Shown here: positions 34,172 through 48,905 of the stretch, piece after piece
Layout of the letters: each line of letters begins with the position of its first letter
Numbering within the stretch: the stretch's first letter is position 1
Assembly: GCF_006345805.1 (NCBI RefSeq)
Contig: NC_042998.1
Span: 148,118,001-148,182,000 of the forward strand
DNA length: 64,000 nucleotides
Origin: Octopus sinensis
Lineage: Eukaryota
Reading direction: 5' to 3'
Made by a program: the position numbers and the translations under genes
Notes under the pieces: model-generated
The model's database searches: none
Told to the model about the DNA's origin: nothing
What the model saw: only the letters and a program-made list of their open reading frames with translations

Positions 34172-34296
34172 CTGCTGTAGGAATCATGACCATTGCTATG
34201 AACGTGTCAATCGAGCTGAGTGTGATTCCCTCACACATACAAAAGTTTACTTCGCTTCATACCATTGGTATAAACATCAAGGGTTAATCTATTGTT
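34172..34296 (+). CDS. PLA2: sPLA2 exon 3 (catalytic His-Asp)
   Basis: TTCCAG| acceptor; translation (N)CCRNHDHCYERVNRAECDSLTHTKVYFASYHWYKHQGLIYC; phase-1 donor T|GTAAGT; phases match exons 2 and 4. Not visible in the ORF track. Confidence 0.93.
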
Positions 34297-34399
34297 GTAA
34301 GTATACACATTAACACCAAGATATTAAACGTACACATAGGTTGAGTTTTTTCGTATTTTAAACTTTAATTAATAGTTTAAACAGATTGAATACGAAAAG

Positions 34400-34680
34400 T
34401 GTTTATTCATTAACATGAACTGAACAGGATCTCCGTCGATTACGACGAGTGTTCCAGTTGATTCGATCAAAGGAACAGTCTGCCCATGAAATTAACGTGT
34501 AAGTGGCTGAACACTCCACAGACACGGGTATCTTTAACATAATTCACAAGGAGATTCGGCGCGACACAGAATGTGACAGGGCTGGCTCCTTTGAAATTGT
34601 GGTACAGCTTAATTTTTGACAGTTGAGTGGACTGGAGCAACGTGAAATAAAGCGTTTTGCTCAAGGACACAACATGTGGC
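34400..34680 (-). mobile_element. SINE family C
   Basis: Reverse-complement match to 29866-30190. Confidence 0.65.
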
Positions 34681-35781
34681 CGGGAATCGAATTTACAACC
34701 TTACACTAACCACCACGCACTTTCACATTCATCAACATATAATTTATTTTCTGTTACATAATTTATTTTTTGTTACCACTTTTGTGCCAGGAGCTCAGTT
34801 CAAGGCAAAACACACCCTGCACCCGTTTTTAACTTCATCCACACTGTTAACAGCGTGCAGGAAATGAGTCATGATTCCAAAAGTGGTAATCTGGCGGTGC
34901 AAGGTCTGGACTGTAGGCCGAGTGAGGCAGCACTTCCATCCCCTCAAGTTCTTCAAGTTTGCACTTGGTCATATTGGCAGTGTGTGCCGGGGTACAGTAT
35001 CATGCTGTAGGAGTGCGTGTCGTTGAGAGCTTATGGAAGTGTTGATTGATGGTGTTTTGTGAAGGACCAAGTTCTGCCGGCAATGTACGAGTGCTTGTAC
35101 TTGGCTGTTATTCAACTATTTCAAGTAAAGCCTCATCTCTCACACCAGCAGTTCTCCCTGACCAAGAAAGGTGAGTCCAGCCTTCCTTGAAACATTTGAA
35201 CTAGTTTTGTACTACACATTCATTGGCAATTCTTTGGGTGCAGCCCTTGTACTAGGTAATTTTTTCCACAGGTGGTGTAAAATGGCTTTAAATGCAATTT
35301 TTCACCACTCATTGTCAAAGCTACAAAATAACGAATAAGCAATTCAGCAAGAATGGATAACAAGTTATATTTAATTGATATAACATGGCGACATAATTTG
35401 CCAAAAGTGGTAAGTTAAAATTCGAAAAAGCTTTCATCTCAACCTGGTATATATACATGTATGTATGTATGTATGTATGTATGTATGTATGTATGTATGT
35501 ATGTATGTATGTATGTATGTGTGTGTGTGTGTGTGTGTATGTGTGTGCGTGTGTGTGTGTGCACAGCGCATGTGCGTGTCTTTATGCTTCTATCTAAACC
35601 GCTTGACAATTGGTGTTGCTTTGTTTAAGTCACTGTAGTTGAACAGTTCAGCCAAATAATCCGATAGAATGTGTACAAGATTTAAAAAGGATTAGTACAG
35701 GGGTAGATATGCTCGACACGGGGTGGTGCCGCAGCGTAGCTCCAGTCCCAATGATTGAAACAAAAGAAGCAATAAATACAA

Positions 35782-36420
35782 AAGAAACCGGAATTTAACA
35801 ATATTATTTTATTCACTTTGTTTTACATGTCTACACTTTTATTTGAAGCAATGCTTCGGTCCAGACGCGTTTTCCACTGTTCGAAGCAGTGCTGGTGCTC
35901 TTGCGAAGTGATGCCTTTTAACTCCGCCGACGTTTTTCTTTCCATCTGCAAATTCCGTAGCACCAGCTTTCGTCACTGGTGATGACCTTCGAAAAAAGGT
36001 CCGGATCAGTTCGCGACACGCATTAGGTCGTGACTGCTTTTGATCTTCCGTGAGCAAGCGAGGTACAAATTTTGCAGCAACTTTTTTCATTCGCAATTCC
36101 TCGCTCAAAATTCATTGGCAGGAACTCCAGGACACACCAGTCATATCAACAAGTTCGCCAATTGTTCGGTGACAATTCTCCAAGATCAGTTCATGAATTT
36201 TCGTGATGTTTTCATTCATTTGGGAGGTCGACAGTAGTCCTAACGAGATTGGTCTTCAAGCGGCAAATGATTGTTCTTAAATTTGTGTTTAGCTCATGGC
36301 TGCGCCCTTGTAAGTTTTTAGCTCATGACAGCTGTTTCGGCCGCCGTTTTCTCCTGCAGAAAACAGAATTTCATGGAAGTACGCCGTTCCTCAGCCATCG
36401 CAAAAATAATCGACGATATA
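35782..36420 (-). mobile_element. Internally deleted mariner relic
   Basis: MKKVAAKFVPRLLTEDQKQ (35839-36108) joined to the C-terminal FEQWKTRLDRSIASN. Confidence 0.8.
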
Positions 36421-36804
36421 TATATATATATATATATGCATTGTTGTACTTTGGGTGAGTCATACTGCCAATAAAATCACATGCACTGGTTATGTTTCAC
36501 TTCAGTTTTATTAGCTGTCACTTAGATAATTAATTAATTAGTTAATCGATTAGTTTGTGAAAGTCCTTTCGTAACAGATTTTGATCTTATCACAAGACCT
36601 CTGAGATGATCAATAATGATTCAATAAGTTGCTGAGGTGAAAGAGATGACAAGGTCACAGTCTGTTACAAAAGGACTTTGACTCTAATGGTTCAACTAAC
36701 TAATGAACTGGTCAAATATTTAATTGATTGGTAATAAAACTAATCTGAAATACAATCAGTGAGTGTGTGTCTTTTTATTATTAGTATGACTCTGCACCTC
36801 CCGT

Positions 36805-46567: not shown

Positions 46568-46602
46568 GTTTAACGTCTCGAGCGGAGCTCTTCGTCAGAA
46601 AC
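46568..46602 (-). ncRNA. Minimal type I hammerhead with A14 to G substitution
   Basis: Minus strand GTTT-CTGACGA-A-GAGC-TCC-GCTC-GAGA-CG-TA-AAC. Confidence 0.6.
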
Positions 46603-48698
46603 ATAGGAAAAGGAAAGATCCAGAGAAGGGAAGACGGAGGGAAAAAAATCGCCAACGGTACACACGCGGTCGCATATATATATATATATATATAAACTGT
46701 TATTAATCAAAACAAGTGGAAGAATAGAAGAAATGAAGTTGAAAATGCACAGCGAATAAAATAGAATTAATTAGAATTTAAATTTATTTTAAGATATACT
46801 TGATAAACTTTACCGGTCTACATGAAATTTCCAAAAGGTTGTAGTGTATGGAGTTGTGTCACGAATTATATCTACTCTGATCGTTGTTATAAAAATAGAT
46901 TGTTGTTAAAGTAGGAATATGGCCCCGAATACTATCCGTTAACGTACAAATTGATTGGTCAACGTTCATGAAATGAGCTCGTCTGGCAACTGCGCGAGAA
47001 TGTCGATTATTAGTAATTTTGCTGTCATTAATTTATTGCAGGAGAGTTCACCGCTATCAATGCACCGTGAAGAAAGTTCACCGCGAGGAAAGTACACCAC
47101 GAAGAAAGTTTACCGAAGAACATACATCCATAGAATCTCAGAATTAATAGTTGAAAACTATTTTATTGAAAAACAAAAATCAAAGCAAAAAACAAAAAAC
47201 AAAAACAAAAACAAAAAAAACACACACACACACACACGCACAAATAAAAAAGAAAAAATGGTGAATTGATGACGGGGAAGTTTTTCTGCTGTGAATTGAT
47301 GACAGTGAACTTTTCTCGCGGTGAATTGAGAAAAAGGAGGCAGCCAGAAATTTGGATAATTATTAATGCTTTCGTTCGTTTAACCGAACTCTTCCAGACA
47401 AAAAAAAAAAAAAAAAGAAAAAAGATAAAAACAGGACGTTTCCTTGTTTTTTTTTTATGTGAGTAGGATGGTTTCTGCTTTGTTTAGAAGAGGAGAATTT
47501 TTTTTTGTTTCTAATCAAACATCATAAATGAGTAGTGTAATAACTTGTATATTGTATATTTAGCCATTCTGCAAGATATAAAATATATAACAAAGCAGGA
47601 CCTGCTTATATATATTTTTGAGTATCTTTCATCTGTGTTTGTCCCCCCACCATCACTCGATAACCCATGTTGGTGTGTTAATGTTCCCCGTAACTTAGCG
47701 GTTCAGCAAAAGAGACCGATAGAATAAGTACTAGGCTTACAAAGAATAAATCCTGGGGTCTATTTCTTCCACTAAAATATCTTGTAAGTCGGTGTTCCAG
47801 CATGGCTGCAGTCAAATAACTAAAACGTTTAAAAGAATGAAAGACTATTTATACGCACACTTGCTCGTGTGTGAGTGAGTGAGTGAGTGAGTGTGTGTAT
47901 GTGTGTGTGTGTGTGTGTGAGAGAGAGAGAGAGAGAGAGAGAGAGAGAAAGAGAGAGAGAGAGAAAGAGAGAGAGAGAGAGAAAGAGAGAGAGAGAGAGA
48001 GTACAGCTCTTGTACTTGTCTTCACACCGCTCGAAAATCGTTGTTGGTGTGTGTATGTCTCCGTAACATACCATTTTGACACAAGCATCCGATGGAACAA
48101 TCACAAGACTTAAAAAGAATGTGTTGGGTCAATTTGTTTAGCTCAACTTTTATAGGCAGTGCTCCAGCATGGCCCTAGTCCAACGACTGAAACAAATGAA
48201 ACAATAAATACGAAGAACGTATTTTGGGTAGGACATACTGCCAGTAAAATCACATGTACTGGTTATGCTTCACTACAGTTTTATTACCAATCAATTAGAT
48301 AATTAATCAATTGGTTAATCGATAAGTTTGTGAAAGTCCTTTCTTTACAGATTTTGATCTTATCACAAGACCAGTGAGATGATCAGTAAACATGCAATAA
48401 ATTGCTGAGGAGAAAGAGAAGATTGAAGGACACAATCATTGGTAAGATCCCAAACTGTTACGTAAGGATTTTGGCAGACTAACTGATGAATCAATTGATC
48501 AAATGGTTAAATATTTCACTGTTCGGTAATAAAACTGAAGTGACATATAATCAGTACGTGTGTTTTTATTGATGCATGACCTTCCCATAATAATCAATAT
48601 CAGGTTCGACGCACATTTTCACATCAAGAATATTTTAAAACGAATACAATTAAGTATATTTAATCTGTTTTGTTTTCTTTTTCTTCTCTCTTTTCTAG

Positions 48699-48847
48699 TG
48701 AATAATAATGAATGCCAACAAGCTACTTGTATGTGTGATAAAGCAGCAGCGACGTGCTTCCATGATCATCTGGCTGATTACAATGTCTGGAACCAATCAC
48801 ATTTAGCTAAAATACTAGGTGGGCTTTTCAAACATCACCACGGCTAA
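48699..48847 (+). CDS. PLA2: sPLA2 alternative terminal exon 4B (paralogous duplicate); isoform of 155 aa if spliced from exon 3
   Basis: Same acceptor tract and phase as 4A; (L)NNNECQQATCMCDKAAATCFHDHLADYNVWNQSHLAKILGGLFKHHHG*; all four Cys and the CxCD Asp are retained. Confidence 0.8.
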
Positions 48848-48899
48848 CTCTGAGCACTATTTTTCCATCAACTGTTTTTTCAATTTATAGTAAATCGCC

Positions 48900-48905
48900 A
48901 ATAAA
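48900..48905 (+). terminator. Candidate polyadenylation signal for exon 4B
   Basis: AATAAA in the same context (GTAAATCGCCAATAAAACAAG) as after 4A, with a TG-rich tract near 48950-48970. Confidence 0.55.

Follow-up and report, generated by a model that had tools for sequence, protein, structure and literature searches.

The 64-kb stretch of Octopus sinensis DNA analysed here, called the window throughout, is a gap-free part of CM016860.1 (assembly GCA_006345805.1) containing no N, in which the chromosome coordinate equals the window position + 148118000; the locus retrieved via the annotated protein (L003) is 100% identical to window positions 14945-58847. On the plus strand we found one secreted phospholipase A2 (sPLA2) gene of four exons, the last of which is present in two copies, 4A and 4B, as checked by translation. 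Here, we argue that the two copies probably both serve as alternative terminal exons.

The coding part of exon 1 (24945-24993, +), located by a scan for ATG and donor sites, encodes the methionine and a 15-residue hydrophobic start of the signal peptide plus one base before a gtaagt donor; XP_029658029.1 begins with exactly these residues. Exon 2 (31584-31728, +; phase 1 in, phase 2 out) carries the KR end of the propeptide, the N-terminal helix and the Ca2+-binding loop YGKWCGFGGSG. Exon 3 (34172-34296, +) encodes the catalytic His-Asp helix with CCRNHDHCY and the beta-wing, and offers one donor (T followed by gtaagt) to both last exons. The coding part of exon 4A (37147-37289, +) contributes 47 residues including the split codon, which comprise helix 3 with its C-x-C-D motif and a C-terminal helix, and ends with TGA at 37287-37289; that of exon 4B (48699-48847, +) contributes 49 residues with a His-rich tail and ends with TAA at 48845-48847. 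Both copies are phase 1 with an open frame, and AATAAA follows at 37364 (4A) and 48900 (4B). This layout had been proposed in a sequence-only reading of the same stretch, whose description of the two exons (shared acceptor tract, phase 1, open frame, four Cys, the CxCD Asp and AATAAA) proved correct in every point. Joining exons 1-3 to 4A or to 4B and translating reproduced its products of 153 and 155 amino acids (aa), respectively, and its hand count of 27 shared residues out of 46 agrees with the 58.7% given by tblastn; the other 19 of the 46 positions differ. Exons 1, 2 and 3 are each single-copy in the window (tblastn with each exon peptide). The remaining best matches to exons 1-3 in the 64 kb had E > 0.02 and were low-complexity noise, and the large open reading frames (ORFs) of the window turned out to be low-complexity sequence or degraded retrotransposon fragments.

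The duplicated unit is a block of ~2.2 kb in which exon 4 is the sole exon. Block A (36446-38601, +) spans exon 4A with the last 700 nucleotides (nt) of intron 3 before it and 1.3 kb after it; block B (48219-50491, +) is a copy of it at 75-80% identity, likewise with ~0.7 kb of intron 3 and ~1.3 kb downstream of the exon. Blastn resolved three collinear pieces, pairing 36446-36779 with 48219-48570 (77%), 37037-37532 with 48586-49060 (79.5%) and 37798-38601 with 49679-50491 (75%), and the repeat-family scan also shows the blocks (families D9, D12, D18 and D20, with D13 and D14 additionally in block A). The duplication that the sequence-only reading had placed at 36455-38600 and 48232-50480, ~11.6 kb apart, is thus confirmed, and the tblastn result in the gap-free window bears out its claim that the block holds only exon 4 and its flanks, without second copies of exons 1-3.

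Block A is interrupted by a SINE-like (short interspersed nuclear element) insertion at ~36780-37036, and block B by a microsatellite expansion at ~49061-49678. The SINE-like copy, ~190 nt 5' of exon 4A, was inserted after the duplication and is present in O. bimaculoides too. It belongs to a dispersed family (36804-36957, 39080-39145, 39262-39415 and 50909-50974) with related inverted copies around 52508-52763 and 54303-54574; ARAGORN detected no tRNA-like structure in these repeats. Nucleotide matches between the upstream part of the gene and the region between the blocks are dispersed repeats in mixed orientations. One of them, 32067-32628 against 45672-46175, was considered as a relic of a larger duplication including intron 2 and was rejected: the element has another, inverted copy at 44088-44382 and is not followed by any trace of exon 3.

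Is the duplicated last exon particular to O. sinensis? The sequence-only reading had suggested looking for it in other octopods, and it is present in both O. vulgaris (L001) and O. bimaculoides (L002), whose loci have the same layout of one set of exons 1-3, then 4A, then 4B; the O. bimaculoides assembly contains ~4 kb of N between the two last exons. The common exon layout of the three species indicates that the duplication predates the split of the O. sinensis/vulgaris and O. bimaculoides lineages. Synonymous divergence (dS) between the paralogous exons 4A and 4B is ~0.41-0.47, compared with 0.16 for the core exons between species. The full-length protein search returned only the gene's own cluster, so that the dating of the duplication reaches no further than the genus Octopus; the 88-aa piece from exons 3+4A gave no matches when a word index of proteins was searched.

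Conserved processing signals of the two last exons

In an alignment of four sequences, 4A and 4B of each of O. sinensis and O. bimaculoides, the longest stretches without a single difference are non-coding: 34 nt at the acceptor, 25 nt around AATAAA, and 24 and 18 nt further downstream. The acceptor run (37119-37152, + for 4A; 48671-48704, + for 4B) consists of the acceptor tract and the first six exon bases and is identical in both copies of both species. In the 3'-end processing region of 4A (37353-37448, +), the AATAAA lies within the 25-nt run (37353-37377), which is followed by the 24-nt element (37398-37421) and the GT-rich 18-nt element (37431-37448). An A-rich run, a potential site of internal priming, lies after 37381. 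The corresponding region of 4B (48889-48975, +) has its AATAAA in the same 25-nt run (48889-48913) and the same downstream elements at 48928-48951 and 48958-48975. In 5000 shuffles of the alignment columns, the longest run had a mean of 8.9 nt and a maximum of 24. As judged from this alignment, the terminal-exon signals of both copies are under visibly stronger constraint than the coding parts. This retention of splice and polyadenylation signals in both copies provides the best sequence-level argument that both are used.

According to these observations, the terminal exon was duplicated in tandem before the species split, along with ~0.7 kb of the upstream intron and 1.3 kb of downstream sequence, and each copy kept its own acceptor, stop codon and poly(A) signal. 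We propose that the donor at 34296 would choose between two acceptors with the same sequence over 34 nt. Joining to 4A (37147) and cleavage after the AATAAA at 37364 would yield the 4A enzyme, while skipping of 4A and read-through of its poly(A) site for 11.5 kb would allow splicing to 4B (48699) and cleavage after the AATAAA at 48900. The outcome would be two mutually exclusive enzymes with a common signal peptide, N-terminal helix, Ca2+ loop and His-Asp helix, diverging in helix 3 and in the C-terminal helix and tail. We infer that both exons are spliced in vivo in O. sinensis, that the choice may be set by competition between splicing and polyadenylation at 4A and read-through, and that the two proteins may differ in function. 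For the use of both exons as alternative terminal exons we estimate a probability of roughly 0.8. The sequence-only reading had put forward alternative last exons on one core as well; the layout, the conservation and the deposited models for both endings speak for this idea, which is weakened on the side of 4A by the doubtful N-terminus of the O. sinensis model.

One predicted fold with two endings

Both translated products score well above the PF00068 cut-off of 32.1 bits (104.0 bits for the 4B form, 104.3 bits for the 4A form), and the exon 3+4 pieces alone still match with E ~1e-12. In an alignment of 81 sequences, the columns of YGKWCGFGGSG (exon 2) and CCRNHDHCY (exon 3) are invariant or nearly so, and the four cysteines of each exon 4 fall on invariant or nearly invariant columns of the family (C112, C117, C119, D120, C126), with the helix-3 motif reading CTCD in 4A and CMCD in 4B. 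The residues contributed by exon 4 form the last part of the beta-wing, the third long helix (with C-x-C-D) and a C-terminal segment free of Cys, which AlphaFold2 predicts as a short helix with lower confidence. With XP_036356059.1 (P0002) modelled as the 4A form, the two isoforms obtained the same secondary structure (predicted local distance difference test, pLDDT, of 87.8 and 87.2; predicted template-modelling score, pTM, of 0.78). The top Foldseek matches were all sPLA2, the best being 5wzm at a template-modelling (TM) score of 0.86. After the KR site, the mature proteins have 10 Cys and calculated isoelectric points (pI) of 5.7 (4A) and 6.1 (4B), and exon 4B contains six His compared with two in 4A. 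By these models, both isoforms are equally compatible with the sPLA2 fold. Both are putative Ca2+-dependent sn-2 esterases.

The best matches by sequence and structure are sPLA2 of groups I, II, V and X, headed by human group IIE (E = 6e-22, 37-38% identity; structures 5wzm/5wzo). The octopus protein has their Ca2+ loop, catalytic His-Asp pair and helix-3 Asp, and it adopts their fold of three helices and a beta-wing in the models. In contrast to the sPLA2 of groups I, II, V and X, it has 10 Cys only, lacks the first Cys of the usual loop pair (YGKWCG) and adds a Cys-free C-terminal extension of ~15 residues that is predicted to be helical. The octopus sPLA2 fits no vertebrate group assignment.

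Probable use and divergence of the two exons

Between them, three annotation efforts have deposited models of both endings, and both isoforms are already in RefSeq/GenBank as computed models under generic names derived from snake toxins. The exon 1-2-3-4B protein is exactly XP_029658029.1/XP_029658030.1 (O. sinensis isoform X2) and CAI9717503.1 (O. vulgaris). Isoform X1 of O. sinensis (XP_036356053.1, 157 aa, in the same 90% cluster) has the 4B ending as well, and X3 (XP_036356059.1) is the sole O. sinensis model ending in 4A. Among the O. bimaculoides models, X1 (XP_014780847.1) and X3 (XP_014780878.1) have 4B-like endings, while X2 (XP_014780854.1, UniProt A0A0L8IC38), to whose C-terminus that of exon 4A is 89% identical, has a 4A-like ending; A0A0L8IC38 is the original gene model of this species. 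A truncated O. bimaculoides X4 is also in the 90% cluster. The support for 4A thus comes from two O. bimaculoides annotations and O. sinensis X3.

On the side of 4B, a further model from O. vulgaris, CAI9717502.1 (140 aa), leaves exon 2 early, at an unusual GT donor after 31683, and has the 4B ending. It loses 15 codons (31684-31728), the Ca2+-binding loop included, and its product is presumably catalytically dead, to go by the residues lost. The O. vulgaris annotation took in splice variants that PASA had assembled from Iso-Seq and RNA-seq reads (PMC10700109). As CAI9717502.1 in this annotation combines an unusual donor with the 4B ending, real 4B-containing transcripts likely exist.

Several observations weigh against the use of both exons as functional alternatives. 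Both splice junctions rest on third-party gene models, and the exact-protein look-ups returned genome records only, with no transcript-derived contig carrying these proteins; the exact 153-aa 4A isoform was not found in the protein collection by look-up of the exact sequence. No 4A isoform from the O. vulgaris annotation is in the 90% cluster. In addition, X1 and X3 of O. sinensis contain an N-terminal FTVS segment (CFLFTVSD) that needs a non-canonical splice in the O. sinensis genome. Upstream of exon 2 (31571-31583), O. bimaculoides has tandem acag/tcag acceptors 6 nt apart, which give rise to its +VS isoforms (L002 ~17577-17589), and in O. sinensis and O. vulgaris the upstream acceptor site reads actg. 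Given the non-canonical splice, X1 and X3 were probably propagated by homology from O. bimaculoides proteins and not derived from transcripts. The ratio of non-synonymous to synonymous divergence (dN/dS), underpowered over 46 codons, shows no purifying selection on either exon 4. Moreover, conservation of exon 4B between O. sinensis and O. bimaculoides (88.0%) is below that of its flanks (93.8% and 92.9%; Fisher p = 0.036), which could reflect positive selection or relaxed constraint.

Between the same two species, the core exons 2+3 have a dN/dS of 0.20. Exon 4A differs by 6.5 non-synonymous and 0.5 synonymous changes, and its conservation (95.1%) is close to that of its flanks (92.8% and 95.3%); for exon 4B, the counts are 10.5 and 3.5. 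Of the 18 differences in exon 4B, 12 are derived in the O. sinensis/vulgaris lineage. Among these is a net deletion of 16 nt (48836-48850 compared with 37280-37310), through which exon 4B of O. sinensis and O. vulgaris lost its ancestral TGA. The frame now runs on into the former 3' untranslated region (UTR), from which the tail ...KHHHG arose; the ancestral TGA is retained in O. bimaculoides 4B and in every 4A copy. As far as such small numbers allow, the substitution pattern fits relaxed or diversifying selection at surface positions over a fixed scaffold, and 4A-to-4B gene conversion in O. bimaculoides could be a partial source of the pattern in 4B.

Do the protein differences between the two endings matter? 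Both exons might be used and differ without adaptive significance, the second copy being kept for a role of its 3' UTR or another regulatory role, or as neutral redundancy that has not yet decayed. The near-identical predicted folds, the similar pI, the equal Pfam scores and the weak selection statistics are what such an explanation would lead one to expect. However, the amino-acid-changing substitutions occur at about or above the rate of the flanks with the scaffold residues fixed, 4B gained its His-rich tail through the 16-nt deletion, and both copies have persisted from a time before the species diverged; we therefore regard this explanation as possible, yet on the unlikely side. On an adaptive reading, 4A and 4B would be kept as functionally different enzymes for different tissues or contexts, with 4B under lineage-specific diversifying selection; one form could, for example, be a housekeeping or digestive enzyme and the other serve defence or venom. 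The diversifying component is suggested by the faster change of 4B relative to its flanks and by its new His-rich tail. This reading is doubtful at present; if true, it would amount to toxin-style diversification acting on a single exon and not on whole gene copies.

A rival to alternative terminal exons would be a well-preserved pseudo-exon: O. sinensis/vulgaris would have just one working last exon, most plausibly 4B with 4A skipped, and the second isoform would be a computed model only. The transcript-based O. vulgaris annotation with 4B endings only, the apparent homology transfer of X3 with its non-canonical N-terminal splice, and the lack of demonstrated purifying selection on 4A in the dN/dS analysis would all agree with this. 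Nevertheless, O. vulgaris has the same exon 4A as O. sinensis and O. bimaculoides one that is 95% identical, with frame, Cys, Asp and stop intact, and its 34-nt acceptor and poly(A) region are invariant over paralogues and species. When neutral drift at the rates of the flanks was simulated, ~6% of the trials retained the ORF together with all four Cys and the Asp, a probability of neutral retention of ~0.06. Furthermore, 4A ends the original O. bimaculoides model, and, lying upstream of 4B with an identical acceptor, it is the first of the two to be met by the spliceosome. We consider a pseudo-exon improbable on these grounds. Finally, that 4B belongs to a second PLA2 gene with its own exons 1-3 between 4A and 4B, or is an assembly artefact, might be entertained from the clustering of PLA2 genes at the locus, with a neighbouring paralogue, and from the ~4 kb of N in O. 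bimaculoides, but is hardly credible given that neither the gap-free O. sinensis window nor the O. vulgaris locus contains other homologues of exons 1-3 (tblastn, E < 1), that what the upstream part shares with the inter-block region is dispersed repeats of mixed orientation, and that the copies are just 75-80% identical and occur in three independent assemblies.

The neighbouring paralogue and related systems

The sequence-only reading had overlooked a third exon-4-like sequence, which tblastn located at 60916-61055 on the minus strand. This sequence is the final exon of a paralogous gene, XP_036356061.1 (P0013; locus L004), which encodes 154 aa in four exons with the same phases and a single last exon. 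Its exons 1-3 lie beyond the end of the window (past 64000), and it is arranged tail-to-tail with the gene studied here at a distance of ~12 kb. Its product is 49% identical to that of the studied gene in the library search, and only 72% identical to its O. bimaculoides counterpart XP_014780833.1 (P0160). With a convergently oriented whole-gene paralogue next door, whole-gene duplication and last-exon duplication have both occurred at this locus, and the earlier suggestion of diversification without whole-gene duplication does not hold.

The paralogue also bears on the suggestion that the gene with the duplicated exon encodes a putative toxin. The proteome of the O. vulgaris posterior salivary gland contains one 'same and unique' sPLA2, protein group 434 (PMC7693380), whose best match is XP_014780833.1 at 73.7% identity (PMC7693380, supplement). 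The studied gene's own O. bimaculoides orthologues are 82-89% identical to its product. Since the gland protein matches XP_014780833.1 best and not these orthologues, it probably does not derive from the studied gene, and the known salivary sPLA2 is, on this one data set, most likely the product of the neighbouring paralogue. The studied gene's product was not found in this single O. vulgaris gland proteome, which would be compatible with expression at a low level or in another tissue. These data lend no support to a role in venom for the gene that carries the duplicated exon.

Elsewhere in the window, a compound trinucleotide microsatellite, (TCA)n(TCG)n(TCT)n, occupies 33968-34127 and stops ~45 nt 5' of the exon 3 acceptor, and the sequence overall is very rich in TG/CA, TATG and TCT repeats. 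Degraded fragments of retrotransposons of the non-LTR type (without long terminal repeats) lie at 25941-28260 (intron 1) and 53371-53838, with weak RVT_1 scores of 22.9 and 25.2 bits, under the cut-off of 29.6, and one zf-RVT match.

The proposed mechanism is alternative splicing from tandem duplication of a (terminal) exon, which is of a long-established kind. The best-known C-terminal case, and the nearest functional analogue, is the insect gene of serpin-1 type. Its duplicated reactive-centre-loop exons are spliced alternatively, as cited for PpSerpin-1 of Pteromalus puparum, and such splicing has rarely been documented for venom genes (PMC12758981). The octopus gene resembles serpin-1 in that a secreted protein is varied by adding one or another of its duplicated C-terminal coding exons, which share one phase and exclude each other, to a constant core. 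Unlike serpin-1, it belongs to a different protein family, is known from sequence alone and has two copies only, both of them truly terminal and each equipped with a poly(A) signal, that is, alternative last exons and not internal cassettes. For the PLA2 genes of snake venom glands, the coding sequence reportedly evolves faster than the non-coding sequence, as is said to have been described by Nakashima, Ohno and colleagues in the 1990s. Similarly, exon 4B differs more than its non-coding flanks (88% compared with 93-94% identity), mostly by non-synonymous changes; in contrast to the snake genes, the effect in octopus is limited to one exon of 142 nt, is borderline (p = 0.036) and concerns a gene whose venom status is unsupported.

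We found no description of this isoform pair in the literature searched by accession, by alternative last exon and by the topics of cephalopods, PLA2 and splicing, and these sources are silent on the origin of the exon duplication, its age, the conserved processing signals and the fast evolution of 4B. The phospholipase A2 mentioned in a paper on the white body of O. maya is an unrelated calcium-independent enzyme.

In summary, we found an sPLA2 gene with two conserved last exons in three Octopus species. As it stands, the finding mainly confirms the automated annotation and adds an evolutionary reading to it. Should both isoforms be expressed and differ in activity, the gene would be an addition to the short list of alternatively spliced genes of venom type and would offer a natural swap experiment of helix 3 and the C-terminus for work on structure and function of sPLA2. 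The sPLA2 family normally diversifies by whole-gene duplication, and here a conventional paralogue adjoins for comparison. On the same condition, the two isoforms would provide a clean, small example of diversification by terminal-exon duplication alone.

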